Of a DNA stretch of 64,000 nucleotides, positions 13,401 through 39,372 are shown one piece after another. The first letter of the stretch is position 1; each line of letters starts with the position of its first letter. The DNA is taken from the NCBI GenBank assembly GCA_964057225.1, contig OZ059897.1, positions 7,316,001-7,380,000 on the forward strand. Reading direction: 5' to 3'. The translations under genes were made by a program, and so were the position numbers. The notes beneath the pieces were generated by a model. The model had not been told where the DNA came from, did no database searches, and was given only the letters and a program-made list of their open reading frames with translations. This DNA is from Auanema rhodensis. Taxonomy: Eukaryota > Animalia > Nematoda.

Positions 13401-16106
13401 TTGGTAAAAGTTACTTTTTTTATATAAAACTTCAATCAAATAGCATAATAATATGGAAAGCAAGCCGTTTTGTGCGATACAAAAACTCTAAAGAGTATAG
13501 ATTCGACGAAAAGTTTGAAAATGGCTTGGGCAAAAGGAAGAACATGGAGGCGGCTGAAAATAGTGACAATTGACATAAACGACGTCTTCTCACAATTGTT
13601 GCAATATAAAACATCGTCAATTGACAGAAAATAAATATACTTATTCAGTGTATGAAATAGTTGACACAGAACTGAGACCGGAAAGGTTAAGTAGGATAAT
13701 AAGCATTCTTAGCTCATTTTACGCAAACAGTTTTGAATGAGCATTACTCAATGAAACTATTCTGGTTTCGAAAACATGAATATTGAGCACAATGCTAGAA
13801 CAAGGAATATTCTTATTTTATAGTACAACACATAATGAAATAAAAAATAATGCCCTCGAGAAAAGGAGAGGGAACATTGTTAGATGACAGAGTTGAAGAA
13901 CTTTTTCAAGAGTTGGGGTAGCAATGAAGAAACATTGAAAACCCAGAGGACAAGAGAACGATTGAACAAAAAAAATGACGAAAGAACGTCTGGATAGCAA
14001 GTAAGCAGGATAAAACCAAAAAGTTTCAACGAATGTTAAAAGGAAATATGCTAGGAAAGGACCGGAAATGCAGAAAGTCAATATGATGAAAGCAAAAAAT
14101 ATGACGAGGAAGACGTCAAAAAAGTAAAAACTTCAGGAAATAATAATAATCAGTACGATAATCAAATATGCCATGAAGATGCTGGTGCAGACATGGAAGA
14201 GACGTACGGATAAACCAGTTCATATCATTTTCAGATAAAGAATGATAACTAACTATACGTGACTATATCACATCACGTACGTGGATTCTGGCTTTACTTG
14301 TAAGTCCGTTCGCTTTTGTTGTAATAAGCTAAAAACGATAAAAATAAAGCGAATGTAGATGGAATGTCTAAGCTTTGAAATGAAAGAAAAAAGAAGAAAA
14401 TGCTTTAGCTGTTTTTTGGGTGAAAACATAGCGCGTCCAGTCATTCTTTCCATCTATTCTTCTAGATCACTTCGTTTTTTGTGCCTATTAATCGACTAGA
14501 ACGGAATATAAAATAAAAAGAAGAAACATTCTTCTCAGATAAACTGAAAATCAAATTAATAGTAACCATATAGCAATATTCATATTCACATCAACTAACT
14601 ATATGGCCATATTATCAAGATATAATTCAAACATACGTCCTTTTGATGAAGACATGACTTCAAATGAAATGCTATTAACGAGGTTCATATGACCTTCAAA
14701 AATTATTCAAATGGAAAATGGATATGATGGTGTTGATGATGATGAGTTTATAGACAGATTTACTGCTAAAGATAGTCCTCTCTGTGTCAACTATGTAACT
14801 CATTCAATTCAGTTCAATTTTTTTATTTTCAAGAAATTTAGTTTATATAGCTATTTAGAAATTGAAACCAAGATCACAGAACATTTAGTTTGAAGAGTAC
14901 TGCGCCAATATACGAACAATTGATGTGGCCATGGTTTTTTTTTAATAAAAAAATACATTTTTGTATTCAATTACTAAGACTCAGCTGATCAGAATGTTTT
15001 AGAAACATTTTGAACAGAGGATGAAGAACATGACGATGATCATGATCATGATAAGGAGAAGAAGAAGAAGAAGATGATGATGATGAAGGAAAGGAGGAAC
15101 AAGATACGACGTATGTACGAAGAGTAACAATACGTTTGTATTTGATATTTTTAGAAAATATTTTAAAAATAATTTGTAAATGAATAAAACAGTGTGTGGA
15201 ATAGTCAAAAACGAGGGAGATTATGAGAAAACAAAGCAGTATCCTCCCGATCAACGGTCATTATATCTTTGAAATATTGTTGTTACAATGGGTTGAAGAT
15301 CAACATACTATTATATTATATATAAATAACAAGTTTAAAGTACATATTAAATTCAAAAAAAAAATCAAAATAACTGTCGATCTGTAGTTATTACCGTTGT
15401 TGGAAGGAAAATGTAATTTAAACACGGATGATTCTACTATTAAATATAAAAATCTTAATCAAACTATGACAGAATAGATGGTAAATAGCAGATATATCGC
15501 AACAACATGAAAACATTTTTTATTGGTTTGAGAACTTTGCTGCTATATGCTGTCTAGATAAGAGTTGCAACCAGCTCTGATTCGTAGAGCTGGAGGCAGA
15601 TGGAAAGAAGAAAAAGAACAAGAAGAACAAGAAGAAGAAAAACAAAACGAGAAACATGAAAGTATTCCATTTAAAACCTGAGTAAAACTTTGATAGTCTC
15701 TGGGGACTAGCGAACCTAAGTGTTCCAAGCAATTCAGCAGAACAAACTAAACAGACTTTAAGAAGACAAAGGATGATACGAAACATATTTTCGTTGTTCG
15801 AAAAATTCGTCAAAGAATTAAAGCTGAATAAGTTTTCTGGCTTGCGAACATTAATTTCTCTTATAAGCAATAAGACACTGAAAAGCGACGACGACGACGA
15901 CGACGATGTTGATGAAGAAGGAAGAACAGAGAGTAACTGATATAGAGTTGTCTGTTCAATCAGAAGCGGAAACAGGTTTAGAAAACGTTCGCTCGTTGAA
16001 AATGCCACAAGCACCAAAACCTCGAGAAAAAAAAGGTGGAAAATTCTTTAAAAAATCGGCCATAAAGTATGTATGGTTATCAATAACAAACTTTGAAACA
16101 ATACAT

Positions 16107-16679
16107 TGACCTCATGCTGATGAGAAGTTGTAGAAATAGGCTGCATGCACATAGATGATACAAGATGGGCATAGGACAGTGTCCTTCGATGAAAAACAAA
16201 TGAATTGAGATAGCAAAAACTATCTTTCAGCCTTATGGAGTTGTGGATTTGACCTCGGGACAAGGCGGCAGGGACAATTGACAATGATTTCAACAATCTA
16301 TTTCTCTCAGCCTCTGGTGGTGGTCGTGGATACTGGACAGAAGTGAACTGAGTAAATAGGAAAAAGCCGATACGATTGACCTCAAACACGAGCCACTGCG
16401 ATGAAATGTGGAACTTGGATTGAAGTGTAATTCTCAAGTTTCCAAATGGCAGCACACACTGACCGCAGTCCATTAGCATGAGAAGAAAGACGGGAGGAAC
16501 GAGATATGCGTACGGCAGTACGGAGGATGACAGAGATAAGCCATAATAGAAATTTGACCATTTCCGGTCAAACAGCAGCAATGCATCAGGAGAACAGACG
16601 GAAGTAATGTTTTCAATCGGACATGAATGACAAGAGATGGAAAGAAGAAGCCGTCTGGTTATCGCCATTTGATGACCTC
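16107..16679. promoter_or_regulatory. Cluster of four same-orientation TGACCTC (GAGGTCA) nuclear-receptor half-sites; candidate enhancer
   Basis: TGACCTC at 16107, 16250, 16377 and 16673 in a GC-richer island. AGGTCA is the canonical nuclear-receptor half-site. Confidence 0.4.
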
Positions 16680-18318
16680 GAGACGGTTTTGTATATGGTT
16701 GAGGAAGGAGAAAAGGAAAATGAAAATTAACTAAGAAGATCGTTCAGAAAGACAAGAAAGAGATAGCTGTAGAGATAGGGTAAATGAAAGAGAGAGAGAG
16801 AAAGTAGAAGAAGCCAATGTATAGTGAGACAGATGCAAATCCTATCTAAGCTTCGTGCTCTCGTCTATATAAGGCATATAGTGATGTCAGTTGGAAGAGA
16901 GGAAGTAGACAAGATGTCTGTTGGATGAGTACTCAGGGGGGGGGGGTAGGAAGAGAAGAAGAACTAAAAGATGGCAGTTCGAAATAAGGAGATAAAGAGA
17001 GAGAACACATAACTATGAGAGTAAAAGGAATAAAGAGAGAACAAAAAGAATAAGCTGGGTACTGAGAGAGGGTGGGGAAAGAGTCAGAGCCTAGAGGTTT
17101 TCTCGCATCATATAATGGAGTAGCAAACAATAAAATGAGAAAAATCAATGAACACTCTTTAGCTTCTTCCTTTTCATTGTCAGCGGCATCTTCTGATCCC
17201 AAGGATGCGCAGACAGAATTGGAAAAATTGAGATGGCCAAAAGAGAGCTACAAGTGTCAGCAATATTTTGATGGGTGGCTTTCGGAAAAAGGAAGAAATG
17301 AGTTGCGGAAAGCGAGTGAAAAAAAGTATCAAATAACCCTTGTGAAGACCCACAGTTAAAGAATATAGTGTGAGAATTTCATGAAGAAAATGAAGAAAAG
17401 AAGGAAGAGAAAGAGTGGAAGAATCAGAAAGAGGTCGCGCAGACTGTGGGACCGTCGCCGTTGTTGCGCCAGCATTTCTTTTATCTTCTTCAAAGCAGCA
17501 CTTGAAGGAATTGCAACATATAGAACGCCGGCATTCTGATTGGCAAACAGCTTCAGTATTGAATAAGCTTCGGAAAATATATTCATAAACTGTTCGTTTT
17601 GCAATTGAGGCTGTTCAGGACCTGATCCCGCGAACAATCTCATTCAGCTTAGGCTCGCAACATCGGCTAGCAAAATGGACTGGAAAAGCAGCGGCTATAT
17701 CGTACACATACACACACACACACAGACAACCACATCAACGAACCAAAACAACACGGAACAGGGAAGTAAGATGAATGTAAAGGTGAACATGCACACATGT
17801 ATATCTAAGCTATATATTATACATTGTTGACCAGAAAATGTAGTAAAATACAGCAGATAAAGGTCATTTCGAGGAAATATTCCGGTTGGTTAAAGCTGTA
17901 GCCACAGCTATTCTCTATCTAGAAATTATTATAATCTGGAGCAATGCCGAGAGCTGTTTCGTTATTTTCTTTGGAAGGCCACAAAAAAAATTTGAAGAGA
18001 CAAATCAATTATAATCAACTATACATGTATAACAAAAGTATTTTTATAAATGTCTTATATCACATGATGCTTTGATTTTGATTAGATTATATAGATATAG
18101 AGAGAAAGGAATATAATAAGGGAAATGTCTTTAGAAATATGTTATATGACGTTGAACTCTTTGGGGTTGAGCATCGGCTTATCTAACTCTGCAGTGAAAA
18201 CCACATAATAGAGAGACTTACTGATATGCGAATAAAGAAGAACAAGCTAGAAATCAAGGAGCCAACGAAAAACGACGGAAATAAAACAAAAAAAAAAATA
18301 AAAATAAAAAAAAATATT

Positions 18319-19646
18319 TTAGGAATGGAAACGAATAATCGTCATGACGCCAGCCTTGATGGCGAAATTGATTGCATCTTTTTCGAACGTAGTTGGACCG
18401 CAGACAGCAACCTAAAACAGAAAAAGCGTTGACATGAATATCGGACATTATATCGAACTGTTGAATGAGTGAAAAGGAAAAAAATGCCTTTAGGATTGAT
18501 TTTGAGGTATAGAACAGACTTAGTGACATGGAAAATGACTGTGAAAAGGGACAAAAGTGACCACCGCTGTATCGTCGTCACGGTGAGAATAGGAGTGATG
18601 TGAATAGGATAACAGACAACGTTTGAAAAGTTGCTGAGGGAGAAAAAGAGAGGAGACAGAGATACAAGAGGAATATGCTGATATAGAATAGAGAATGGTA
18701 AAGGTAGAAACAGCTATAGAAAAATGTAAAAAAGTATTCAAAGTGAGTGAGAGAAGAGAACATGACAGTGAAAGAGAGAAAAGTGAATAAGTGCGGGCGG
18801 GATGCATAGATGATTCAAAATCCTACTCATGTTATTTCAAAAAAAAAAAAAGAAAAAAGAAAAAAAGTTTCGAATGAAGACACAGCAAAATACACACAAA
18901 CACAGTTTGTTGTGTTTGTTTCAGAATGCGCTTGGCTTGGCTGTACATGAATCATGATGTAGCAGGAAGGGAGTAGAAATTAGAATATTATTGGATGTTT
19001 AGATGATTTCACGTGAACTTGAAAAAGACGCAAATCTTATCATTTTATAGACGTTATAAACGGTAGATTCCTCATAAAAATCTGATTGAAATGGGAAAAA
19101 AAAACGAAAGATAAAATATTTTTTCGGAAACGAAAGAAGAGCAATTAATCATATAGATAAAGAGCAAAATTTCAATGACGATTCTGAAGAAGATGTATGC
19201 ATGCAAGAAGAGGAAAAAGACAGAATGAGCAAGTAAAAAAAAAAAAAAACATTGCAAATGCGTTCAGCTGATGAAATATTTACCGTATTTGTAAGAGACA
19301 GTGTGTGTCATCACTTATAAGTCAGAGATTGAGTGTTGTCGTCAGCTGTTCGAAAAAATGTTAAATGGTTCAGAAAATGCGTTGAAAGAGCGGAACAATG
19401 AAGACGATAACCACAGCTGGACGTACTTAGTCCCGTAACGGAGGCAGAAGGATGACGGAAAAGCTTTCAGCTGCTTTCAACCTCTTTGTCATCGATAAAT
19501 AGATGGATAATAGAGGAGGAAAGAAAATAGAAGAAATGGAGAGGAGTAAGAAAATAAAAAGAAAAATGGCAGACTATGAATACGTAATAGGTTTAACTTG
19601 GGCAAAAAAATGAAATGAAAAGGTCACGATTACCAATGTCAGTATT

Positions 19647-19694
<48 letters not shown>

Positions 19695-21001
19695 ATATTA
19701 AATCATAATGCTATAATCTGATAGTAGAATGAAGAAATAGTAACATGGTCTAGACTCATATGCTACGTGTGCGTACGAGAGTTGTCTCATACTTATTTCA
19801 CTAATTTCGGTGCCGAAAGACCGCCCTCATCGAAATTCTTCGTGTTGCGACCTTTGTGGATGGGAGCGGAGTAGGGTGGGAGAAGGAATGAAGGATAGGG
19901 TGCAAAGGCAAAAAACTAAATATTTGCCATTGAAACGGACGTTTTCTTTCTTGATGTCTATCATGTTTCCCCATTTTGTAATCGTTAAACGGGGAATTTT
20001 TCTACTTACAAGCTCAGTTCACTACAGGTTTACACGGACTACGTCAGCGGAAAAAATAATGTACAGGAAGGTGAGAGAAAATTCGAGAAATTGCTGAAAA
20101 AAAAAAGACAGAGCATTTGCTTCTTAAATACGTGAAACTAGAGAACCTCGGAACTCCGGTTGGTATTAACGTTAACGGCAGGTGTATTCATAAATATTCC
20201 ACTGTAGACGACAACGCCATCCGCTGTCTGATGGTATACACAGGTAGAAGGAAAGAGAAGATGAGACCGATTTTACAGATAAGCACAGCAATTCATAGAA
20301 AAAAGCTTTTTATAGCTCGTTGGAAAAGCAAACAGTTGTAGAATTACAACTTCAGCTTGTGAATCTGTGAAATGAGGAAAAGGGAAAGAGAGAGAGAGGT
20401 AGAGAGAAAGAGGGAGGAAGAGAGAGGGAGCAGTTGAGGAGCATGCAACCAATGTGCTACATGGCTTAAAAAATAAAAAAAATAAATTTAAAATGAAAAC
20501 AGGTGACAACTTAATAGATGGGCAATGCAAAAAAAATAATTTTATAGCGAAAATTCGAAACATAAGAGCAGGAAGCGAATGAGAGAGAGAGAGGGAGAAA
20601 GGGAGAGAGCAAGGAAAACATCAACCGTTCTTATGCGTGCATATATGCGAAATGGAAAGAGATACATGTACTCCACGTGTACCTCACGTAAGAAGCCAGC
20701 GTCTGCGTGATATGCAAATATTAAGAAATGTTATTCAAGATCACATCTTGAATTCCGAAAATGTGAACAGAATTTCTTTTCTTTTATAAAAAAAAGAGCA
20801 AAACGGTTCAATAAATTTTTCCATAATATTTCAGCTTTTCCGTTATTCAACTTTGTATATGAACAACAAATTAGACTAGTCAAGCTAAAACGCGTATAAG
20901 CGTATAGAGAAAAAGATTGAGGTAGTCGAGAAAATTACTTAAAGATAGACAAAGATAGATAGAGAGATAGAGAGAAAGAAAAAAAGAGAGAAAGAGAGAG
21001 A

Positions 21002-21038
<37 letters not shown>

Positions 21039-21231
21039 GGAGGGAACAGATGAATGTACAGTGAGAAAATACGTCCATTAAGCTTACACAACCAGGTGAC
21101 CTGAATATCTAATTTGTGAAAAGATGATTATTCTAATAAACGTAATTCTGTTCACATGGATGTATGACTGATCGCTCTGTTGACTATAATGGTAAGAATA
21201 TGCTGGACACAACTGGAGATGTATATAGAAG

Positions 21232-21317
<86 letters not shown>

Positions 21318-24300
21318 TTATGCTTTCGATTGGGTCAGATTTAAAGCATTGATTAAGCTTAATCATAGCTTATACACTTAGCAATATTCTTACATTTCTC
21401 ATGGAAACTTATGTGCTTTGCACACGATTTATATATGCTTACTAGTTATTATAAGCTTATTATTTTTAACTAAACCCTAACAACATTCGTAATATATATA
21501 TATTATCTTTATACTATACGTAGTTTGAATAGCAATTTCCTATACATACATATACACATATAGTACTATTTTGAAATAATTCTATTTTAGTAAAACTGAC
21601 AGTCAAAATTTGCAAATAAATACAGGTTAGCGATGAGAAAAGACGATGGAATCTTTTTTGCCGTAAAAATATGTGAAAATCTAGAATTTGATGTAATTCA
21701 GCTCACATGTAACAGATGTATTTCAAAACTTGAAACAGAGAAAATACGGAGAATAAGCAAACATATTCTATTCAAATGATGAACTTAACAATCAGATGAA
21801 CAATCAAAGTGTATGAAAGATGGAAGAACTTTTCCGATATTCACAATCTTCCTGTTCATCATCTTTATCATCATCGTTGTCGTCGTCGTCGTCGTCGTCA
21901 TGTAAGCAGAGAACGTGTGCAGTGTGTAGTGTATGTATGAATGTGCCGACAAAAGATTAAAGCAAAAAAAGAGAAAAAATGTTTGAAAAAGGGGAATACA
22001 AGAGAAAGAAGAGTCTAATTGTTTTCTAAGAACTGAAGCAAAAAATAAATGCGTACGAAGAATGTACGAGGAAAAAAAAGCTCAAAATCTAAGACGATGT
22101 CAGTCCAACGATTCAGCGTGCGTGAAGAGATGCTATCTCGTCTCAAGTTCATGACGTTCGATTGAATTAAGCCAATTATAAATTTGTGACAACATAACCA
22201 GATGCTCTGAAGCATAATGAGCACAAGTTTCACAAAAACATTCTCTCAAATAAAGAATTTCCCAAAACGCTTCAACTCCTGACTCTAGCATCATGTTTGA
22301 GGAAAAGATTACGGGAATTTATCATTACGTAAGAAGAGCTTGGTGTCAAATGCTACAGTTCCTAAGAGGAAATGAAGAAAGAAAAAAAGATTTTTACAAA
22401 GATCTAGCTGAGTGCTGAGCAAATGGGCAGAAAGAGTTTATAGGAAATGAAAGAAAAAGGGAAAAAAATGAAACGACGATCACTGTAATGATCAAAGAAA
22501 AATTTTCTTCACAATCTGCTGTATGATTATTCTGCTTCAGGTGATTTTTGAGTGAATTAGCAATGAATTTAATATAATTATAGTAAATGATTAAAGTATA
22601 GAATATGAAAAAAAAAGATAAAAAAGAATCTTCAAACAGAAAATAAAATAAAATAAATTATATATTATACTTTTTTCTTTCTTTTTTTTTCTTGGTACTA
22701 TAGTTATTCTTAGAAAATAATTATTTTAAATTATGATAAAACAATAGAATATAAAAAAAATCTGAGATTATAGTATGAAAAGCTACAATGAAGATGAAAG
22801 AAAAGAAGACAAAGAATATAAAAATTATCGAATGAGGTCGAGGAGGACTCGCATACACTGAATGATGACGATGGAAGACAAAAAAAAAGATGAAAATCAA
22901 GCTGCTACACATATCGTCATACAAATGACCATCTAGGTTAGAACGATAGGCGTAAAATGGTCTGTTCTGAAGGGAAGCACACGATGAAAGAAACGAATAA
23001 CAAAAAGAGAAACTGAATCCGTTGACAAGGAAGAAGGAAGAGAAAGAGATGAACGAAGTTGTAGGGAGAGAGGTGAGAAGAAGAACAGTAAGGGACAGAC
23101 AGAGGTTAAATTAAAGACACATCAGGTTCAGCTACGGTCATTTTATGGACGACGTAACTATTTGGACTCGTGTAAGTCCTTTTATGTACAGCGAAAAACG
23201 AAGTTTTTTCTTCTTTTCATCTTGTCTTAGTCTCATTTTCAGGGAGCTGCGGTAGAATGTACTCAGTGGTAGTAGTTGAACAAAGTTGAAAATAGATGAT
23301 AAAATAGGAGAGTTTTAGTTAAAAACTACTGGCAAAACTGAGAAAAGAAAGATAGATGAAGAGAGAGGGAGAGAAAGACAGGGAGAAAGACAGGGAGAGA
23401 GAGAAAAAGAGAAAACAAAAGCTGAAGTAACGATAGTAAACGTACAAGAGCATAAATCAGAGAAAAGAAGGGAACATGACCATCACTAGAGATGTGGAGT
23501 AGTTTCCTTCATCATGATGAAGTATTAAGATGCAAATTGAACAAACTATAACAAGAACCATACAAGGAAAGATCACGCGGTCCACAACGTCATGGCGACC
23601 TTTGCGATAGACCCTCCCATTGCTTGTTATATCCTAATGGTAAAAAGAAAATATATAAGGAAGGAAAGAGATAGATCAGTAAGTTGCTGGACAATGCTTC
23701 AAGTCATAGATCTTCGTTCCGAGAGACGTTTCTCGAAATCTTTACATACTGAAGTAAGGGAGATGAAGAATTGCTTGATATTATTGCTGTGCAGACTCAT
23801 TCTTGATGATTCATCTCAAAAATATTTTAAATTTTATCCTGCTGATACATGATTAGAGGATAGCAAACGAGGTAAGGATGTAAAAGAATAAAGAGAGAAA
23901 GAGAAGGGAGGGGAGAGAAATGACCGATTTATTTAGAGAATAGGATTCTGAAGAGAGGAAAGGAGGAAAGTGTTCTAGACTGAATAAGACAAGACATTTA
24001 CTTGCCGTTCTATTGGGCTTCATCAATCAACCAGGAAACGGTACTGATGGCTACCGGAAAAGAGATTCAAGGAGCAAGATGCAAGACGTTATAAAGAAAG
24101 AGAAAGATAGCAAATTGAAGAGATAAATTCTAACCGCAAGATGACTAATGGGCTTTCACGCTTAGCAGGTGAATGAACACGAACATCATCATTATCATCT
24201 GTTTCACCAGGAAAACTAGCAAACGACTAGCTGATTTCAAAATGAAACAGAAGAAAGAGAAAATAGGAACATATATGAACATAGCTGCCATAGAAACAGC

Positions 24301-24869
24301 TTCAGAACTGAATTTTTCTGTTGAAAAAACATCCAAACAGAGATAATAGATATTTAAGTTTTCTGCTCGTACTGGTTTCCAAGGTAACGTGACTTGCGAA
24401 ATAATAATATTGAGATGGGAGAAAGAGAGAGAGAAAAAGACAGAAAGAGCGACAAACTAAACGTCTTTTATTCTATTTTAGAAAAAGACAGAACGTTTAT
24501 AACTCTTTAGAAGAGTTAGCTACTTGAGAGAGAAATGTATACACATTTAGAGAGGAAGAGAGAGAAAACCTTTTGAAGTGATGCCAAAGTATAGGATAAC
24601 TTAAAAAGAATACGAATAGAGAGAAAAATATATTCTCTTAGCTAACTGGGCTCAAAACAGAAATTCGTCAAAGAAAAAATGCTTAGTTCCGAGATTTACT
24701 AACTACTTATACAACTAGATGAAGGCGTTATACGTAACTATTCAGAAGTAGAAGGTGGAGGAGTTATCGTGAAAAGTAAATGGACGAGTCTTTCTTTCAT
24801 TATATGGTACACATAGTTGAAGATTGAAAAGTGTTAGTATTAGTAGTAGTAAGGGAAGACAAAAACGGT

Positions 24870-24945
<76 letters not shown>

Positions 24946-27900
24946 AAAGAGAGAGAAAAAATACAAGAAACGAGATTTGTGTATAAAAAGAGGAAAGTCG
25001 AGATGGAAGAGGAAGAAATGAGGAGAAGTAAGAGGAGGAGGAAAAGATTGAATCGACCCACATATTCGGGTTTATGATGAGTCATACCGGAATAACGCAA
25101 AGTACTCATGGAGATACAACGGCCATTGAGTAAGTACAAAACTATTTGAGAAAACTTATACGATGTATCATATATATATATATATATGTGATAAAGAATG
25201 GAGAAAAGAAGTTAAAAACAGAAAATGGCAATACAACAACATGTGATAGGAAGAAAGTGGAGTTGGAAAATGACAAATATTCAATATATAAATGTGAATG
25301 AGAGACAAAATTGAAAATATGGGGGAAACATAGCTATACCATATAGTCGACAAATTATTTCTTAGTTTGAAATCTATTCATTATGATCTTTTAAGCAAAA
25401 GAAGCAAGTGATATAACAGCAATATGAGAAAAGGTTGGGTAGGGGGGGGGTGGTTGAAGAGTGTGGAGGAGTGTTGATTGTGTATGAAAACTATACTGAG
25501 TCAGTCAAAGTTTTTTTAATGTTTAATGCTGCGTACACATATAATTCTATTTTTCTTCTTTAATAGAGTAGTCGTGTAGTGGCTCCATGTTGTCAATATC
25601 ACATTCGCATCATCATCATCATCACCATCCCCATCATCATCATCATCACCATCACCATCCCCATCATTATCAGTATGTTGATGGTAATATTTCAATTCAT
25701 ATGAGTTTAACAGAATAGACAGCACGATGGTAGACAACAGCAATGGTAGCAGGAGACACAAAGCGAAGAGAAAGGTTTTTCAAATCCAAAAATAGAGTAA
25801 TTATGAAAGACAATGTAAACGGAACGGAAAGATAGGGGAGAGGGGGGGGGGGTTCTAATTGGAAATTGAGTGGAAAATAGAATATGATGTCGTTGACAGA
25901 CTATGTGGATAACTTCAGCATTACACCGAAATGTTGTCACAACAAAGCTCAGCACTGCTAATCCTTCGTCGTCTGGCGTTTCAAGGATTTCAGCTGTATT
26001 ATGCTGGTGCAGCTAGTTTTTAGCGGCTAGCAAGAGGAAGAAGAAGAAAAATCAAAAAGAAAATCAAAGAAGATAAGTAAGAAGCATGAACAGATGTTGA
26101 GAGTGCGAGCAACAAACCTGTAGAGGACGTGAAAGAGGTGGGGAGTAGAGAAATGTGAAGTTGGGGTAGAGAGGTGGAGCTTGCTTAAAGCCCAGCACTA
26201 TAGATAATGAGCCAATGAGAGGATGAGAAAACAGGTAAAAGAAAGAGACAACGAATAAAATATGACTGAAACTCAAAAAAAATAATATTTTGAAATCGTT
26301 CAAAGCAGAGGGAGGGATGGCTGGCAGGAGAGAGGCAGGAAGCGATGGAGACAAGGAAGAAGCAAGCATTGGAAACATTATCGAAGTCTGCACACATGAT
26401 AGTTCAACAAGTTGTGTGTATGTGTGTGTATGTTATATGTCACCAATCAGCAATTATTGACTAAAGGTGTATTTCATTTCAAAAAAAAAGTGAAAAAGAG
26501 ACATAGGAGCATGGAAGAAACAAAAAATAAAATTCGTCAATTTATCAGTTCAGGTTTTTCAGTAATCTCTTTTACTAATTTCTCTAGCTTAATGTCTTAG
26601 GACTGCTCCAATATACCTCATTATAAGCTCTGACAGATGATGTCAAAGCAACAAAAGTGATGATGAACTTGAAAAAAGAAAAAAAAGCTTTTTCTTCCAG
26701 TCATAAGTCAATCGTTTATGGATGAACGGAAGATAAATATGACTCAAATTGAAAAAAAAAGAGAAAAACCATTGATTGATGTAGTATAGCTATCATGAGA
26801 TAGCATACGAATCATCATAACCAAAATGAATCATTGGATAAGGATGTTTAATCAAACTGATTCTAGAATAAACAGTATGACCTACCGTAATATTTTCATC
26901 GGATGTTCGTAGCTGTTTCAAATGCTTTTCCATAATTTCCTGACTTAGACGTCCGGCTTCAAATTTAACCAAATACGGAAGATTCTATAATGATGTTAAG
27001 TTTATAACAGTGAACTGATAGAACAAGAGAGGGGGGGGGATAAAGTGAGAGACAGGGATAGAGACAATTTTTGGTTAGACAATGAGAAAAAGGAAATGAT
27101 AATTGTGGGAAAGTGAAATATTAGATAAATGAAATGTAATAAATCAAAATGTACTATATAATACATGAATAATACAGTTAGATACTTAAATTCAATTAAT
27201 CAATTACATAATTCTATTTATACTTCTATTTAAAAAAAATAATTGTCTAAAGATGATTTTTGAATTCGAAAACTATGGCAGAGGGGTGGGTGAGGATATT
27301 ACGATTGCCAAATCCCTCTCAGAATCTGTTTTCAACACACAAAACGGTGGATTATTCATTCAGAATATGAACTGAAACTTCAAAATATGACGCAGATTAT
27401 TTTTTCTTTTTTGTAAAACTAGAATTAAAGATATGAATGCAACCGCATGCTAGCACTCATGAACAGAAAATGAAATTCACGTTTTTCCGTGGAAAGGAAG
27501 TGCACGCACAACGTGCTAGTCCTGTGCGGAAAGAGTTGGTTGGACGACGCACAGGGAGCTTTTCAGCCTAATCTCAGTAGACTACAGTGAAGTCAAGATC
27601 AAAGTAGGAAGTTAAACTACATATTAGTTCATGAACATATTTTCTGTTTATTTAGAATTGTATATGTAATCGTATTGTAAATGTTTATTTTCGAAAGAAA
27701 AATGCTAGGTTGCTTAATCTCATTAACAGCTTTTCTTTCACAGCCTTTTTTTCTTAAAACTCATTGAAATAGCTTGTAAGTTGCCTTAACGTTATCACCA
27801 CACCTACACTGACTATGTGATTGGTGATTACCTTGTTCAATTCGGTGACAAGGATTGCGAAAATCATAAGAAGCATTTCAGAAAAAAAAGAAACGCAAAT

Positions 27901-30900
27901 CCTTGCGTTAGAAGGAAGCAAAGACTTAAGGACAACAAATTCAGATAGACAACGTAAGTTTTCATTGAGGTATCTGATGTTATCAACGTTTGACTTGTTT
28001 CCTTTTTGTCTCTCCAAATTCAACTTTCCTCGTCTCGTTTACTCTCTTTTTCCATCCTCTCACACTGCTTCCCGCCGCCATTTTCTCGTTTTTAAAGAGT
28101 TTTCAACGCATTGTTAACATAAACGATTAGTTGAATAAGTAAGGATTGTAAAAGACGTTTTGTCGACGAATATTGGTAAATCAACATCAAATTTCAGTTG
28201 AGACGATAAAAAGGGAAGGGGGGGGAGGTTGCCAATTTCTCGCCTTTCTATTGTATCCGTTGTTTACTGATGAGCAAAAACTCCATATGATCGGGATAAG
28301 CAATTCGTAAGTCACAAGGTAATGAAATCAAAATCAGAAATCAAAAAAACAGAAGAAGAAGACGAAGAGGAAGAATTGAAAATGAAAGAGAACATCACCT
28401 TTGGTGCCATCTCGTCGGGAGCATGCTTGCTCAGCACGAGAGTAACTCGTGCATTCCATGATTGAGCCCATTCGGTCAACTGATTTGCAAAGATAACATC
28501 ATCTACTGTGCGTACACAATAAAGCAAGCAGATCCGACGAAGAGCAGAGTTGGAATTGTCTTCCGACAGTAAATGGTCCACAATTCGTACAAATGGTGCG
28601 ATTCCGGTTCCGGCTGCAGCAATGAGTAGGTGAGAAGCCTGAAAATGATGATGCAATAGAGTTGAAAGATCTCGAGAGATTTTCAGCAAGAGTATATGAG
28701 CAACGAAGCACTCCAAATACTCCAAAACGTCTCATGAGTATATCTTGGAGCACAACATAAGGTCAAATACATAAACCAGCACATATATCATTAAAATACA
28801 AACACATTTTGCTATATCGTAGTCAAAAAGAAAAATAAACAAGTGATTCAAAAGAAAATTCAAATGTAAATTGAAAATAAGAGCACAAGCTTTATGATGC
28901 TTTGAATTTTCATACACCAGCCTCATGAGCAGCTCTGAGAGCATTAAATGTAAATAGACTGTTTTCATTTGTTTTTTTGGCCCCTCATGTTTTGGCCTTC
29001 TGTCCATCATCATCAAGATTTCTTTATCTTTTCAATGCTTGATAAGAAAAGTCATGAGAATGAAAAGCTAATAAAGATTGAATTTCAAGAACTATTCCGT
29101 GTATATAGCCCATTCACTAGATACATACATCGACTGGCTCATGATTACGCATTCCACGTGAACGTCATTCTACACGAAGCAAGGGGTTGGGAGGGAGGGG
29201 GGCACAATTCGGCTGCTTTTTCATCTTTGTTACCGAATTTTCTTGTGTCATATTATCAAATCAAATGAGTAAAGTAGGAATAACATACGTTTTTCCAATC
29301 TTCTTCTTCAGTATACGGACCACGACACTCAATCATATCGCCGACTTGCCAATGACGAACTTGTGCTGATAATTGTCCATCCTTATAAACCTTAAAGGAT
29401 ATTTCGTTTAAAAATTAAACAGATGCTTGATAGTATTAAAGATTAATTCCCAACTCTTGGGCAGCTGCTACCTAGTCTCTGTTTATCTGTCTAGTTTCTC
29501 ATCACTTATCATCATGTTGTGGTCATTTGTGAATTTATCTGTTTTTTTTTGTTTTTTTTTAATAAAAAACAAAAATAAAAACATATTTCTTCTTCTTTTT
29601 CTTCAGAAAAAATATATAAACACGTATGATATGAGCATGTACATGTTGTTAAGTTGGCAAAAAAAGGTTTCAAGTATGTGTATACGCATGTTTGTACATG
29701 CTGAAGCTTTACCTCAACTCTCTAAATCATCATCACCCGTGACAACATCACTCAATTTCTCTTTCAATATTCATAATTTACCTTTATGGGAACTTCGAAA
29801 AATTCTTTTTCAACCCTTGTCGGAGTATACTGACGCGAAATGTAGTGATCATTCAAATTTAACCTACAAAAAAAATTATTTTAGCTGAAAATTTATTCTT
29901 TTTTTTTAATTTATTTATAATTCAAATTATTTTGTTTATGCACAGTTGCTAGTTCCTGAAAAAAAAGATTCAATTTGAAGACAGAAAAATTATTTTTTGA
30001 ATACAATCATAATAGAAATCTTTATTCTTATTTAGATAAATTATGAAGAAAAGTGCGCAGATGAAGATGGTAATACGGAGGAAAATAACATGAATTCTAG
30101 ATATTATTCTGCGTTAACTAGACAAATATTCAGATTAACTCATCTGAAATGTCTGAAATTTGATTTTCAGCATTAAAAAAGAAATGAAATTTGAGAATAA
30201 TTGAAGGTAGACGAACAACGAGACACTTTGTTTGCCCAAACTTCGTTCTATTGGCTTATTTTGGAGATCGTGAAGAAAAAATGCATAGGTCTAGGTGGAG
30301 GATGAGGGTGTTGGCAGAAAAAATTATTTAAAATAGTTTCTATCCTCTATTACTATGAATTACATAGTAATCATAAGGATATATCCCACAAGAGGCAAAT
30401 ATGGCTTTAAGAATGGACCAATAATTGGAGTCATTAGAATGTAATCAACAATCATCCAGTAAGCTTTAAATTGTAATCGACCCCATGATGGGAAAAAGCG
30501 GACATTCGTGTATGAGACATCAACTTTTCCCTGCTCCATACGCTTACGAGCCTGCTCAACCTGAAACAGTGAGATTATTTGAAGCTTAACTTAGTAATAC
30601 AGTATGTAAGAAAATACTCAAGAATTCGTCAAGTACAAACCTTTTGGAAGTTGCAGGTGCCATTGTTATCAGTGAAATGAAATCCGAATCTTCCAAGTTG
30701 CATTAGTTTAGATCCTCCATCAGTTTCACAATCAAGTTGGATGATATATGGAGGATTTTCTTGAGCAGTATACATCCATTCCCATGAGTGAGCAATTCTA
30801 TAAAAAATAAAGATAAATATATGAAATATATAGTTAATAATAGTTTGATATTTGATGATCCCCCCCCCCTCCCCTGTCTTTTTCTCTCTCTTTCTTTGTA

Positions 30901-33900
30901 GTTTGTACAAACAACATAGCCCAACTTAAAGAACTGAGACTTGTAGTTGTGAAATTTAACTGGCATACTTAGGTTAATAGACACTCACAAAACCAGAATA
31001 TAAAACTAAAAAAACATCGAAAAAAAATAAGACGTAATAATAGATTTAGAAAATACTTAAAAAGAAATTATAATGTGTGATTACACACTTCATCTCTTAA
31101 AAATGAACAAAAAACATGTAGCTAAGATAAGAAAATGAAAACACAACCGATCAGCAGGCATTACTATTATAAAATGAAATAATTTGCATAATTATTGTAC
31201 AATCAATCGATATTTGTACAAATAAATAATTTTTAATATTTTCTCCGGAATATCCAGTTTTCATAATATTTCCGTTTTTCTTCTTTATTTTTAATAAGTT
31301 GTCATGAAAATAACTTGCTTGTATCTTGTACTCTAGATGAACTTCATAGCTCATTGAGTAAGGTTAGAGAAGACTAGTGTATAATACGATTTCCAAGTAA
31401 AATATCGTCAAAATACGGTAAAAAACGATATTTAGATTGAAAATAACGAAAAATTGCAAAGTATACTGTATGTCTTCCAAGTGTTTTTCATGTGAAATTT
31501 CAGGAATAAAGAATTGAAGATCTTACTTGTGAGGAATGAATGCACATCGAGGTTTTTCCCAAGTATGGCATTGATGGATCATTACTCCCATATCTGGAGT
31601 ATACCAGTGAGCAAGTTTATCAGAAAGTCGTTCAAAGAATTCCAATGTATCATTGTTGGCACGGATGAAGAAGTTAGCTCCTGAAAATAATAGGAATAAC
31701 TGTTCTCAAATTAGTTCTTTTTTTCTAGTTTTGAGAGAAAGAGAGAGAGAGGATAGAGAGAGATTTCCTTTAAGATTAAAGAATTTCAGAAGTCGAGATG
31801 AAGAAACTATAATTCTTCACCAATTTCCCCAAACCCTCTCTTCTCACCAAACGCATTTTTTTTGAAAATCGTCCAGTTTCCTTCTGAACATTTCAACTAT
31901 TACATACCATAAATAGGCAGAAAATGATGATACATGGAAATAAAAGAAAGAAACTATTGAGAAATAAAAAAAACGACAAAAAACTCTATTTTCTATCTAT
32001 TCATCAGGTATTTTCAAGTTTAACAGCCTTATCTATTTTATATTGAAATGAAAATTCAAGCGTACCGTTTACCCATTCAGCCCTCATGCTGTTCTCATCG
32101 ATACCGATTTGATCAAAGATGGCATCATAAGACATATCATCTTCATATCCCAACTCAAAGAGATTTCTTCTCCAGAATGTATCTTGTTGCATCATCCAGA
32201 AAGATTTTCCTCTTCGAAGTAAAGCAACAGCCAAGTTGGATCGAAGTAAGTAGATTGTCTGATATGGTCCTTCAGCGAAACTGAATGGCTTCTGAAACAT
32301 CATATAGTCTTAATCTGATCACATTTCCGCTAATCTTTAACATTTTCATTAGTTCGCGAGAATTAAATTACTGAATCTTATTGGAATAACTTTCAAACTA
32401 CTTTGAAACAGTGAAATATTAGTATTCCCTTCTCAACTCTATCTAAGTATATTACTGTTTTTCGTTAACTCAATCACATTCCAAACTGTCAATTCTCTGT
32501 AACCTCCTGATTTGTCTAGAATTTCATGTTCTAATTCTGAATGAAATTTCATCACACATGACTGATTTTTCAATAATTCAAATATTATATTCGATGAATA
32601 ATGGTATATATCGAGAATTAACGTCGTCTACATACAGTCGAGCCATCATCATGAATGTCTATAAAAAGAAAAAAGTTTGGGAATGGGCTATGTGTAGACG
32701 ATAGACCTCTGCGAACAAGAGAACGATGATGAGGATGAAATGGATAACTTTCAAATGAACATATACAACATGAGGATGATGACGAACGATGACCTTGCAG
32801 GTTTGACATCCCTCACCTTTCGTCCTCCTAGTACCCTGCATACCATACTCCTGCACCTCATCCCATGCTTTACTCTCTTCGTCCCTCTTAAACTTGGTTT
32901 CGCATCATTTAACACATACGCCTACATTCACAGTCATACTACTCTAAATTTATCGGATTTGCTATTGATCACTTGACCGTCAGACCTTCCGGTAATCCGG
33001 AAAAGAGGAGAAACGTTCTGAAGATAATCGTTTACCAGACGGAATTAGACCAATCTTATCTTCTTTCGCTCCTTCTCTTACTAAATCTCCTTCAAATTTC
33101 CATTCTCTTAAACTCTCTTATAGTATTCTTAGTGGGCTTTCCTCTTAAGTATACGAAATAAGGACAAAAAAATGTTTAAGAAAATCCGAAGAACAATCTT
33201 TGAAGAACAAAAGTAAAATCGAATTTGAAATTGATGATGAATTTGCGTGATTGTCTCTACAAATCAAAAGATCATCTTTCATTTGTTTACGAAAATAAGA
33301 TTGTTCGATTAAATTTAATTAAAGTTGATAATTATGATTTCAATCCGCTTAATTATCGGAATAAATGAGCGAAAACACTTGAAAAAACCCTAAATCAGGA
33401 CACAAATTGTTTTGTGGGCTAAGACTCTGCTGCTTATTATGAACTAGTTTAAACATATTCGAACGAAAAATCGACACTCTTTTCCGGTTTAAACGTTTTT
33501 TTTTGGTAGAGGGGAGGGGGCTTTATCACACTTTATATTAAATATTTTCAGAAGCCAGAAAAAATTTTCCTTAAACAAACAGCAATTAATTTCAAAATCC
33601 CGAACATTCTCAGTTTTTATTTTTATGAAAAAAAAGAAGAAAACTCACATAGAGACTTGGTGTTGGCCAATGGAATTGACGAATTTGTGGCCAAGCTTTC
33701 TTCAATTCATCACGAGCAACTGTATCCAAAGTAACGAAGATGAGACGCTCGTGAACTCCATCGAGAGTGGCGGTGTTACACAAGAAGTTGTATGTCATGT
33801 TGAGAGCATACTGATTCAGAAGTAAAATTGCGGGAGGACGGGTGAATTCGGTATCTAATGTGTGAATGAGGTCTTCAAATTCGGGAGAATTCTCAATCAA

Positions 33901-36284
33901 ACGAATAGCTACGGAATCTCCGTGGCTCTTAACGTAGCGAACGGCGGCAATAGCATTTTGAGTTTTACGGAGAACCAGCAGACCGAATACGAACCAGAAT
34001 CCATAAAAACACAGCATGACAATACGTGAAATCCAGTGCCACTGACGTGGTGAGATCCAAACAACATCTTCAGTTTTACCCACAATTTTCTTCTGTGTAG
34101 TATTCTTAGGTTTCTGTTCTACAGCAGTAGAAGCAGATTTTTCATTCTTTTCACGTTCACTCTTGCTTGTCTGAACGTTACTACCAGCAGTCGAAGGAGA
34201 AATACGATGGCGCAAGCCTGTGCCTGTCGTCATCTGAAACAGACGGCAAATATGAGGATATGTAGAAAGAAGCAAAGCAAAAGTCGTGAAAAAAATGAAA
34301 TAAATGTTAAAACACGGAAAGCTGAAAAATGATTATGCAGGAATGAAATACGATCAGAAAGACAATGAATTAATAAAGAATTCTAATGAAAAATGAATTA
34401 GAAGAAAACAGAATCACATAATTAGGAACACTTATTAGAGCTGACGACTATTTCCGAGCAATACATAACAGCAAAATGACATTTTTTCTAGGAATTGATG
34501 TACAAATGATCTTATTGTTTGATGTTAAACTGTTCGCCAAACCAGTACAACAATTTCGAAGAGGAGGAGCCGAAGTTCATGTTCTATCAATAAGAGTTGG
34601 AAGCATGAAATTGATGAGAAGCAGCTAATGAAGGTGTGTATATGTGCTGACCATCCATGATAAAAATATTATGAACAGAGTAAAAGAGTTAAGTGAATAT
34701 TCTGAGAAAGAGAGAAAGATCGAATGAGAGATTCCTGATTCAGGTGCGAAATGGATGAAAGAAAAACGGTCAAGAAGCGAGACGACCCCTCGACAATACG
34801 TCAAGAAGTACTGATTGCGGTAGATACGAAGACTTGAACGAGAGATAGCAAGTTACGGACATTCTGACGCGTTTTTTTTCTCAAACATTTTCAGAAATAG
34901 TCCGTTCACTGGAATTAGGTTTGAAATGATTGCTGGACGTTGTTCAGAAATGCAGTAAATAGGAAAGGTTGGAAGAGTCTCCAACTGAGATCTGAAAGTC
35001 AGATTGAACATCTGCCTCCGAATTCTGTTCTCAATTTTTGATCAACCAAGTCGAATGAAATGAAAGATATTTCATAAATGATAGAGAATATGCTCGTAAG
35101 GCCAGAAAAATCTCGAAATATCCTATAAAGTAGTTATAAATCGATTTATCGGCTCAATAAAACTTCATCGAATGAACCTCATCGTTGGAACATCAGTCCG
35201 ACCATAGTCAGTAGGAACGATTCTGTTAGATCGATTGATCAGCAGAAGTACATACGCCCGACAAAGTTCAGACGGTAACGCTGACGTAGGCCTTCAACAT
35301 TCTATTCTAGATGAATAGACAACGATAAGTGTAGATGGCAGGCGATTAAGGAATTACTGGATTTTGAGCAGTCGAGTGATATCATCAGGTAAACAGATAC
35401 ATGTTCTCGAATCTCCCATTCTTCCAAGCTCGTCAATCACTTTTGAAAATCATTAACCTTCACATGGTTTAGTATTTTTTTATTTTAAAAAGTTTAAAGG
35501 CATTCGTAAGAAGAAGAAAACTAATGAAACAAACAAAACAAACTATTCAGAGAAACATGGTGCCAATACCAACTTCTACAGAAACTGTACATGTATGTGT
35601 GTGTGTGTGTGTGTGTGTATGTGGTAAACATGTAATATAGATGAGGATGTTTTGGGAAGCGAAAAGAAGTAATAGTTGAACACTTAGAAGAAAAAAAAGA
35701 AGTTCAAGTGAAAGAGAGAGAGAGCAAAAGAGAGAGAGGGACAGAGAGAAAGAGAGAGAGAGACAGGATGGGTAATACTTAGGCAAGAGAAGGAAATAGG
35801 AGAAGACAAGGAACGTATTTCAGGTAGTTTCCGGTTCCTTATGTCTAATTGTGGCGTCTCTGTCTATATATGATTGTCTTCTGTTATGAGCAGGTTGCTT
35901 CATCGAACAATAGCGACCAAGAGAATGTTGGTCATTATTAACAAGTTATCTTTCATAAACATTCTGAGAATGAGACACAGGAAAGAGAAAGAATTTAGGA
36001 TGCTATGCTGCAGGTTGATGATGAAACGAAATGATGATCGAGAGCAGGTTTGAAACATCGAAAGGAAGATTAAGGTAGACGGAAAAGCAAGCACAAAAAT
36101 ATCATAACAGACGTAGATATCAGTCAAGACGTGTATGGCAGTATTAAAGTAAAATCAGTAAAGATAACATCGATAGATCGGCCAAGGCTACCGCAAGTAA
36201 GGCTGGTGTACATTCAACCTTCAGCTATCTCATCCCCCAGGCCACAGGGGGTTGAAAGATAGTAGAGCCTAACGACATGGACAG

Positions 36285-36377
<93 letters not shown>

Positions 36378-39372
36378 AAGAGAAAAGGGAGAAAGAGCGA
36401 AAGGTAGAAGGCAATGATGAAACAGAGAAAAAGAGATTGAAAATGGAAATATAGATAGACAGCCCATAGTTTAGGGCTATGAAGGGAAATAGAGGTCAAC
36501 GTCAGGATGAGTATGACATCAAAGTGTTCCGTGAAAATCTCTAAATAACGAATGTTGAAAGCAAAAAACAGCATGTTTTCAGAAGCAAAAAACCATGTTT
36601 TTATGTGCTCATGGCTAATGCCACGAGAACAAACTAATTAATCTAGTACAATGTGAAGGTATTTCAGAATTGAAGAAGTTGCACAGTTGACGGCAGAAGG
36701 GATTATTGCAAAAAGTGGAGACAGCTAAAGCCTGTAAATGACCCAATTCAGTTCACAAGACCGGCCCAGTGATCCGGCACCCGCATGGTCGGTGGAAATC
36801 GTTGAGTCTCCAAACGTTCAGTGATAATCAGTGCAGCGTAAAAGTGATAAATTATATGCGAACGAGTCTGGCGCTGAATCTCATCCTGGGATGATAAAAT
36901 AGTTCTACTCTTCAAGTTTCAAGCCAAGGATATCGCACTTAAAGATAAAAAGAGAGAATGGACGTCCGAAAAGTTGAATAAGCGTATAATTATGACAAAG
37001 GAGATGAACAGTAGAATGATACTGAATACCATACATTCAAAGAATCTGGAGCAGATCATGACAGCGTTAGAACAATGACTAAAGGATGATTTGCACTAAG
37101 CGATCTGTAAAGGGTCAAAAAGGGACGGCGAGACGGAGGACGGATTGAATCGACAATCATCAAGATGACCTTGCACCCAACCAACTATGTGCTTGGTAAA
37201 GTTAAATTGGCTTGTAATCACGCTTTGTAACAAGAAATCATAGGATTAACCTTCCGATGTTGGGAACTCAAAAATAGCGTGGATGACATATATCAACCTA
37301 GATACAATTCATCAAGCAATTACGCTGAAAACAACAACTTAATGCTACGTTGCTAATATGCTAATATGCTAATTTGATGAACTAAAAATTATGAAAAAGC
37401 GAATTCATTTACACAAGCAATAATCTCTCATGCGGTTGCATTTTACGTTTACATCTTATCTTTTTTCAGCTTATTTTCCAAACATGGCAATTATTAACAT
37501 TTAAAACAACCATTGGATTATACCATGCTCCAAAGCTACGAATTAGCAATGGCGCAAACTACTGATCTATTGCTTAACTATACGGAATAAAGCGTTAGCT
37601 ATAAAGCGCTGTTTTAGTTCAATTTCTTTTTTTTTAAAGCTACTAATCTAATAGACATGAGTCGCCATCAACGACGATATGATGATCGCAGGCATTATCA
37701 ACCCAGGTCTGCTAAACGTGGGGGAGCTGTACCTGATAGGTGAGTAAATATTGTATTTACAACTCCGATTGTTTAATTTTCAGGTGGCTCCATTATGATG
37801 CTGTTGGAAAGGATATAGAAGGAACTAGATTTGTTCCATTTAAGACTCCTCTTCATCCTCATGTTTTCAACAACCCTAACTTGTATGATGATACGTTTCA
37901 TGTAGATATTCTTCTTCAATATGTAAGTTTTCGTTAAGATTGTTAAGTTATATCCATTGTATATAGGCTGCAGAGGCTGGACACTCTATTGGTCTTGTAA
38001 TTGATTTAACTAATACTGATAGATATTATGACAAAACACAATGGGAGAAACACGGAGTGTTGTACGAGTAAGTTGTTTCTGAAGTTAAAACATTGGTTGA
38101 TACACATTGGTTTCAGAAAAGTTCGTTGTCCTGGGCACGAAGTTCACGAAAGAGAAGATGTAGTGGCAAAATTTTTCGCAATTGTAGATAATTATTTCAA
38201 TACACGTAAAGACAGTAAGATTTAAGCTTCGAAACAAGTTTTAAAAAATTTCATTTTTTTCAGCTTCACTTATTGGAGTTCATTGTACACACGGGCTCAA
38301 TAGAACGGGTTATTTGATATGTCGATATTTAATTGAGCGCTTAGGATGGTCCGCTGATCAAGCAATAGCAAGTAAGTTTTCAAAATGCATATATTTTAAA
38401 ATTGTAGTTATGTAGGTTTCGAAGATGCTAGAGGACATCCAATAGAACGACCGCAATACAAAGAGAAGCTTCACGAAGTTGAAGCTCGAAAAGTAATAAT
38501 AGTACAATAGAACAACTAGAGCATATTTTTGAATTTCAGAAAAGTTCTGAGAAATTCGAACAAGTCGAACAAGGTGATGTAGGAAACTGCAATGTAATTG
38601 ATGATAAGGAAGAGGTGAAGTCTAACAATAGTCAAGCTGTACCAGACTTATGATGTCTCTTGTTACAAAAATTGTTGTTATATTGTTGTTTTGTTATGAA
38701 AATCCTACCAGCATTGTTAGAAGAATTGAGTAAAATTAAATATTCTAATTTTGACGGAACTTACGTGAACTAGCATTTTATTTATCAGAGAACTAGCAAC
38801 TGTGCAGGTTGGTTTCACTTTTGAATTTTGAAATATGGTAAATGAGCGCACCTTATTCTTATATGACTAGCGATTGGAATCAGAATTGGCTGTGGAGTTT
38901 TGAGTTTAACAAGCACTGTGTGATCGTTTAGATTTTCAATATGCGCGAGCTCTAATGGTCTGAAATAAAGTATTAGAAAGATCCCCTTAGACTATAAAAC
39001 CTAAATTCAGAAGAAAACCAGTCCTTAGATTCGTTTGTAGGTTCCGAGTCATCGAAAACATGCTCATATAAAGTTTTATCTTCTAAAGCAAGAAAGAAGT
39101 ATTCATAAGACTGTTAATATATACCATGCTTGATAAGTTTACTATATTCTTTTGCCCAGCGAACTACATCATCAAAGTGTATATCGAAAACACATGGTTT
39201 ACATGATTGACCACAACAATCCTGCTCGTTTAAGATAAATATTTGAAAGAGAGAGCAAATAAAAAACCTGAGGAAATGGTTCGTTAGGCTCTTCCTCATA
39301 TGTGTTCCCGCATTCAGTGACATGCTTCCGAACTAGGCGAACAATCTCATCGTCGGCTTTCTTCAGGTTCAT
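18319..39372 (-). CDS. NADH-cytochrome b5 reductase-like protein (CYB5RL-type: N-terminal oxidoreductase-like/OXLD1 Cys domain + FAD- and NAD-binding FNR fold), 9 exons, 335 aa
   Basis: Phase-consistent GT-AG exons: 39372-39268, 39221-39125 ([13 protein letters not shown]), 39082-39001, 38959-38852, 29863-29782 (ISRQYTP, the FAD RxYT motif), 29390-29289 (GQLS...GDMIECRGP), 28638-28399 ([12 protein letters not shown] binding), 26984-26886 (GRLSQEIM), 18411-18319 ([12 protein letters not shown]...RFHS*). They total 1008 nt with no internal stop. Confidence 0.93.
19650..19691 (+). repeat. (TC)n microsatellite
   Basis: Perfect TC run in the last CYB5RL intron. Confidence 0.95.
21235..21315 (+). 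repeat. (AG)n microsatellite
   Basis: About 40 perfect AG units; a further imperfect AG tract lies at ~20960-21035. Confidence 0.95.
24873..24938 (+). repeat. (GA)n microsatellite
   Basis: About 33 perfect GA units. Confidence 0.95.
30360..34233 (-). CDS. Nucleotide-diphospho-sugar transferase family protein (Nucleotid_trans-like, type II membrane), 5 exons, 440 aa, nested on the same strand in CYB5RL intron 4
   Basis: tttcag|ATG at 34233. Exons 34233-33649, 32291-32066, 31680-31527, 30797-30641 and 30560-30360 are all in phase. There is an N-terminal TM segment ([18 protein letters not shown]), then [38 protein letters not shown] and a hydrophobic C-terminus ending YILMITM*. Confidence 0.88.
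36290..36371 (+). repeat. (GA)n microsatellite
   Basis: About 41 perfect GA units. A short (TG)n also lies at ~35595-35618. Confidence 0.95.
37657..38653 (+). CDS. pir-1: RNA 5'-tri/diphosphatase, DUSP11/PIR1 family, 7 exons, nested antisense in CYB5RL intron 4
   Basis: MSRHQRR...VPDRWLHY...[10 protein letters not shown]...[14 protein letters not shown]...VRCPGH...[21 protein letters not shown]...[11 protein letters not shown]. The catalytic [10 protein letters not shown] motif is present. No guanylyltransferase domain follows (stop TGA 38651-38653), so this is not the capping enzyme. Confidence 0.93.

Follow-up and report, generated by a model that had tools for sequence, protein, structure and literature searches.

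The window analyzed here is a 64,000-nt stretch of the Auanema rhodensis genome (GenBank assembly GCA_964057225.1, contig OZ059897.1, positions 7,316,001 to 7,380,000; G000:C5:7316001-7380000 of the 181-Mb assembly), which is AT-rich (about 35% G+C) and contains no N. On its minus strand it very probably carries one nine-exon gene for a 335-residue flavoprotein of the CYB5RL type, that is, an NADH-cytochrome-b5-reductase-like protein. The coding sequence runs from 39372 to 18319 and spans 21 kb. The encoded protein is predicted to consist of a four-cysteine Oxidored-like domain, an FNR-type barrel for flavin adenine dinucleotide (FAD) with the motif RQYTP, and a domain for nicotinamide adenine dinucleotide, phosphorylated or not (NAD(P)H), with the motifs GTGIAP and CGP.

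Exon borders were placed by script on the minus strand. Exon 1 (39372-39268, 105 nt, 35 codons) opens with an ATG at 39372 directly after a TTTAG acceptor-like site. Exon 2 (39221-39125, 97 nt) encodes the Oxidored-like domain with its CCGxxCxxC motif, exon 3 (39082-39001, 82 nt) is a linker that lacks recognizable homology and is placed by splice sites and phase only, and exon 4 (38959-38852, 108 nt) encodes the first strands of the FAD-binding barrel and ends in phase 2. Intron 4 (38851-29864, 8988 nt) splits a codon as AG|G and is followed by exon 5 (29863-29782, 82 nt), which carries the RQYTP FAD-binding motif, exon 6 (29390-29289, 102 nt), which completes FAD_binding_6, exon 7 (28638-28399, 240 nt), which holds the first part of NAD_binding_1 with GTGIAP, and exon 8 (26984-26886, 99 nt), which covers the variable middle part of the NAD domain. 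Intron 8 (26885-18412, 8474 nt) leads to exon 9 (18411-18319, 93 nt including TAA) with the CGP motif and the C-terminus. All eight introns are GT..AG, with lengths of 46, 42, 41, 8988, 391, 650, 1414, and 8474 nt in order, and the nine exons total 1008 nt (335 codons plus TAA) with consistent phases and no internal stop. The initial annotation had proposed a 335-aa gene across 21 kb, with compact exons 1-4 separated by introns of 41-46 nt, a giant intron 4 interrupting an AG|G codon, and a giant intron 8 ending at a CGP exon; the scripted borders, phases, and exon sum agree with it on each of these points. Introns 5-7 fall between the extremes (391, 650, and 1414 nt), and the gene is thus not merely a set of tiny introns plus two giants.

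The exons were examined singly with Pfam and hhalign, and homologue profiles were run against the six-frame segments of the window. In the Pfam comparison, exon 2 alone matched Oxidored-like PF09791 (1.8e-6, 28 bits vs. a cut-off of 24); it carries CCGQSCKPC with four conserved cysteines. Exon 7, which contains GTGIAP, matched positions 3-64 of 109 in NAD_binding_1 PF00175 (3.7e-9, 37.7 bits), and exon 6 matched positions 69-95 of 99 in FAD_binding_6 PF00970 with an E of 0.005, which for a lone exon is below the Pfam cut-off. Exon 9 carries VAVCGP. With full-length homologues as queries, tblastn recovered exon 2; tblastn also recovered exons 6 and 7, and exon 9 at 53-60% identity.

A profile of 15 full-length non-nematode homologues was compared with all 3318 six-frame segments of the window. 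Its six top matches were exons 7, 2, 6, 5, 4, and 9, all on the minus strand and collinear: exon 2 at profile positions 19-49 (33 bits, the second-best match), exon 4 at 68-110, exon 5 at 107-138, exon 6 at 133-165, exon 7 at 172-244, and exon 9 at 280-300. Exon 8 matched this profile weakly (positions 251-281). A second profile, built from seven nematode orthologues, gave exons 7, 6, 5, 9, and 8 as its five top matches among the same segments, with 25 bits for exon 5, 20.1 bits for exon 9 (positions 173-202), and 9 bits for exon 8 (positions 140 to about 171, rank 5 of 3318). The exons thus stand far beyond chance, being the top matches of two independent profiles among 3318 segments and collinear.

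The two long introns appear to interrupt a continuous protein. When single exons were aligned by hhalign to 14 full-length proteins, exon 4 fell on columns 75-111 (E 3.9e-4) and exon 5 on columns 117-142 (E 6.7e-7), which places the FAD domain astride intron 4; exon 9 fell on columns 284-306 (E 2.4e-5). No profile segment is missing across intron 4 or between exons 8 and 9. The stop codon follows the conserved RF at the same distance as in the orthologues. The CYB5RL-type identity that the initial annotation had assigned across both long introns is accordingly supported by domain content, exon order, phases, and the position of the C-terminal stop.

A further copy of the gene and an alternative last exon closer to exon 8 were both considered and ruled out: exons 7 and 9 are each single-copy in the 181-Mb genome, and across roughly 13 kb downstream of exon 8 no CGP frame other than exon 9 is preceded by an acceptor. 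Only one other Oxidored-like (PF09791) locus exists in the genome (G000:C4:6421052-6421153, minus strand). No NAD_binding_1 match was found near it, which makes a stand-alone, OXLD1-like gene the probable reading.

Full-length CYB5RL-type proteins of 300-340 aa are found in arthropods and other animals, and the window gene matches the CYB5RL proteins of animals in length (335 aa vs. 331-335 aa in the arthropod entries P0007 and P0044; XP_072941050.1 of Epargyreus clarus). They share the order of Oxidored-like CCGxxCxxC, FAD_binding_6 RxYTP, NAD_binding_1 GTGIAP, and C-terminal CG(P/T), and neither CYB5RL nor the window gene has a cytochrome-b5 domain. Identity to animal CYB5RL is only about 32-51% in the conserved exons, and the exon 8 region is divergent. 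The window gene also differs in being stretched over 21 kb with nested genes.

Two complete genes lie in intron 4. The first, on the same strand as the host, is a glycosyltransferase gene of the Nucleotid_trans family (PF03407) at 34233-30360 (minus strand). It has five coding exons and an ATG directly after a TTTCAG site, and the C. angaria orthologue maps to all five exons at 59-87% identity. Its AATAAA signals, at 30026, 29915, and 29897, lie 33-162 nt before the exon 5 acceptor at 29864. The second, on the opposite strand, is a PIR-1/DUSP11-like RNA phosphatase gene occupying at most 37657..38653 (plus strand), which has the loop motif and gives weak matches to solved PIR1 structures. Provided that the host intron is real, the coding regions of both guests lie wholly within 38851-29864. 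The initial annotation had counted two nested genes; the number holds, with both of them in intron 4 and no recognizable gene in intron 8.

We then compared the gene with its nematode relatives. In a library-wide phmmer search with exon 7, the closest relatives came from strongylid nematodes and two Caenorhabditis species, and the best representative had 54% identity. The closest counterparts are nematode models named cytochrome-b5 reductase, such as EYC16840.1 of Ancylostoma ceylanicum and XP_064044628.1 of Necator americanus; further models come from Teladorsagia, Cooperia, Trichostrongylus, Caenorhabditis auriculariae, and C. angaria. The strongylid models P0001 and P0004 show 51-67% identity in exons 5, 6, 7, and 9, and the C. 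auriculariae model P0005 shows about 41% identity in exon 7. The nematode models and the window gene have the same C-terminal end. The window gene differs from these models in having exons 1-4 and, with them, the Oxidored-like domain and the initial strands of the FAD barrel.

All nine public nematode models compared lack the N-terminal exons, and seven of the nine break at intron 4. Six strongylid models (P0001, P0077, P0078, P0079, P0004, and P0080) begin at the equivalent of exon 5 and have unrelated N-termini. Their homologous part starts 7-8 residues before the SRPYTP motif, exactly at the position of intron 4, and the Oxidored-like domain is absent. These N-termini are not conserved among the models and are probably inventions of the gene finders. 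The other two models begin further in, at the exon 6 equivalent: P0005 of C. auriculariae and P0008 (161 aa), the latter falling into one 90%-identity cluster with the C. angaria model.

The C. angaria model CAI5441137.1 (P0081, 581 aa) joins a glycosyltransferase to the 3' half of the reductase at the position of intron 4, and its alignment runs collinearly through the five glycosyltransferase exons and on into exons 5, 7, and 9. It lacks the arginine of RxYTP and the first FAD strands, and for this reason we read it as a gene-finder chimera. The fusion nevertheless indicates that a same-strand glycosyltransferase lies directly upstream of exon 5 in a second nematode. This adjacency is therefore conserved, and the nesting is probably old.

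Word searches with the open frames of exon 7 (candidates of 75-240 aa) and of exon 2 found no protein, and so yielded no public protein or transcript-derived fragment of the locus; a search of the literature on CYB5RL in C. elegans gave nothing useful. The expectation in the initial annotation that automatic annotation would break this gene is supported indirectly, by these empty searches, by the identity of no more than 54% for the best representative in the exon 7 search, and by the nine truncated models, seven of them broken at intron 4. The nesting probably accounts for the frequent failure of annotation at this intron.

The exons could instead have been separated by insertions or by misassembly, leaving a decaying or rearranged relic, or an artefact of assembly, that yields no working mRNA. 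Such a history would fit the position of exon 9, which stands alone, at 93 nt, in about 18 kb of gene-poor DNA, and the lack of any protein from the locus in public collections. We consider it very improbable, given that in all nine exons the frame is open and the borders are GT-AG, with the catalytic motifs retained, that the stop lies at the orthologous position, that the window has no N, and that the adjacency of glycosyltransferase and exon 5 is common to C. angaria.

Several observations weigh against a single continuous gene. A stop codon lies 12 codons past exon 4 with an AATAAA close by, which makes a short isoform possible. The AATAAA signals near the exon 5 acceptor create an operon-like intercistronic geometry. 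That acceptor (TTTGTAG) is weaker than a TTTTCAG 23 nt upstream, the use of which would bring in a stop after one codon of the host frame. Exons 1, 3, and 8 show little or no detectable homology when taken singly (Pfam and profiles), and no canonical AATAAA is present within 700 nt 3' of the stop codon. A second consensus-like TTTTCAG acceptor was also seen about 93 nt upstream of the exon 5 acceptor (window 29864-29960).

Some of these points could be accommodated if the gene were functionally split, with exons 1-4 yielding an Oxidored-like protein of roughly 142 residues and exons 5-9 forming an operon-like cistron with, or just after, the glycosyltransferase, the halves being joined never or rarely. 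The stop 12 codons beyond exon 4, with AATAAA at 38782, would end the first unit, and the poly(A) signals of the glycosyltransferase 33-162 nt ahead of the exon 5 acceptor would suit the second; none of the nine nematode models joins the halves, and elsewhere the genome has a stand-alone locus of the Oxidored-like type. A split would, however, sever the FAD barrel after its third strand, ahead of the RxYTP motif. Exon 5 opens in phase 2 and offers no in-frame ATG before exon 6, and the unconserved N-termini of the strongylid models are what gene-finder inventions would be expected to look like. At the composition of the window, about one AATAAA per 800 nt is estimated to arise by chance. We regard a functionally split gene as quite unlikely.

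Nematode operons are polycistronic, with intercistronic distances of about 100 nt and trans-splicing of spliced leader 2 (SL2). The arrangement in the window resembles them in the common strand and in the 33-162 nt from the upstream AATAAA signals to the next acceptor. It differs from them in that the downstream "cistron" starts in the middle of the FAD domain, in phase 2, with no in-frame ATG until exon 6; the self-contained downstream cistron with its own start codon by which an operon is recognized was not found.

Expression of the single nine-exon gene would begin near 39.4 kb with a pre-mRNA of 21 kb or more, probably trans-spliced to a spliced leader (SL) at the TTTAG immediately ahead of the ATG. 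Ordinary cis-splicing would then remove the eight introns, intron 4 together with the complete same-strand glycosyltransferase gene and the antisense PIR-1-like gene, and the host transcript would have to run past the poly(A) signals of the glycosyltransferase. The predicted product is a soluble reductase that depends on FAD and NAD(P)H and carries a cysteine-rich domain at its N-terminus.

The machinery for trans-splicing is active in nematodes, and genic trans-splicing could in principle join halves that come from two separate pre-mRNAs. Only the geometry speaks for this, a complete polyadenylated same-strand gene being placed between the halves. We found nothing specific for it, cis-splicing of a 9-kb intron suffices, and animals are known to have same-strand nested genes (PMC3814207); we give genic trans-splicing a next to negligible chance.

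It is also conceivable, but unlikely, that the nesting, which is common at least to C. angaria and coincides with the break in the strongylid models, is ancient and in addition acts as a switch, in which each primary transcript from the host promoter ends at the poly(A) signals of the guest, or the 3' half of the reductase is made as an operon-like unit, or read-through joins exon 4 to exon 5. If that were true, suppression of intronic polyadenylation would determine how much reductase is made.

Nested genes and long introns occur commonly among animals. The two guests resemble nested genes of the Drosophila type in being complete genes inside a host intron, one antisense and one sense. In a Drosophila survey, 71% of nested genes were antisense and 73% of same-strand nested genes were single-exon (PMC3814207). 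The same-strand guest described here differs in having five coding exons, and in having its poly(A) signals just before the host acceptor. Same-strand, multi-exon nesting is the rarer kind.

Intron 8 was searched for content of its own. A hidden gene was rejected on the ground that the ten longest frames of the intron gave no Pfam match, and an RNA gene on the ground that no Rfam family or tRNA was found in it. A transposon or other dispersed repeat was likewise rejected, since in the genome-wide comparison nothing of the intron sequence recurred apart from GA microsatellites. Intron 8 is long, low-complexity, unique DNA that is rich in GA microsatellites. A marked 10-bp A/T periodicity was rejected as well (only a weak excess was seen). 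A cluster of the piRNA type was considered and rejected: CTGTTTCA occurs 11 times in the whole window vs. 4.3 expected, and the copies are scattered, several CTGTTTCA copies sitting at splice or trans-splice acceptors.

The plus strand of intron 8 is 62% purine, and the bias runs on to about 10 kb, past the 3' end of the gene. Over the window positions 10000-28000 and 34300-37600 the plus strand is 60-62% purine, and its GC and AT skews are each about +0.2. GA microsatellites account for only part of this bias, which reaches into the gene-poor stretch. Beyond it, at 4971-8800 on the minus strand, long open frames resemble, by inspection, a gene for a membrane protein of the Patched/PTR family, and their 5' end faces the gene-poor stretch at 10-18 kb. 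A single tRNA-Lys(UUU) gene lies at 291-365 on the minus strand.

The main value of the finding lies in annotation. The gene appears to be the first complete nematode model of the CYB5RL type, and its layout probably explains why nine public nematode models lack the N-terminal exons and why seven of them are broken at one and the same intron. The layout is real and trips up automatic annotation; it is otherwise ordinary and points to no new mechanism or protein family. It provides a clean case of a multi-exon guest on the strand of its host, which may be used to study the passage of an internal poly(A) site in nematodes.

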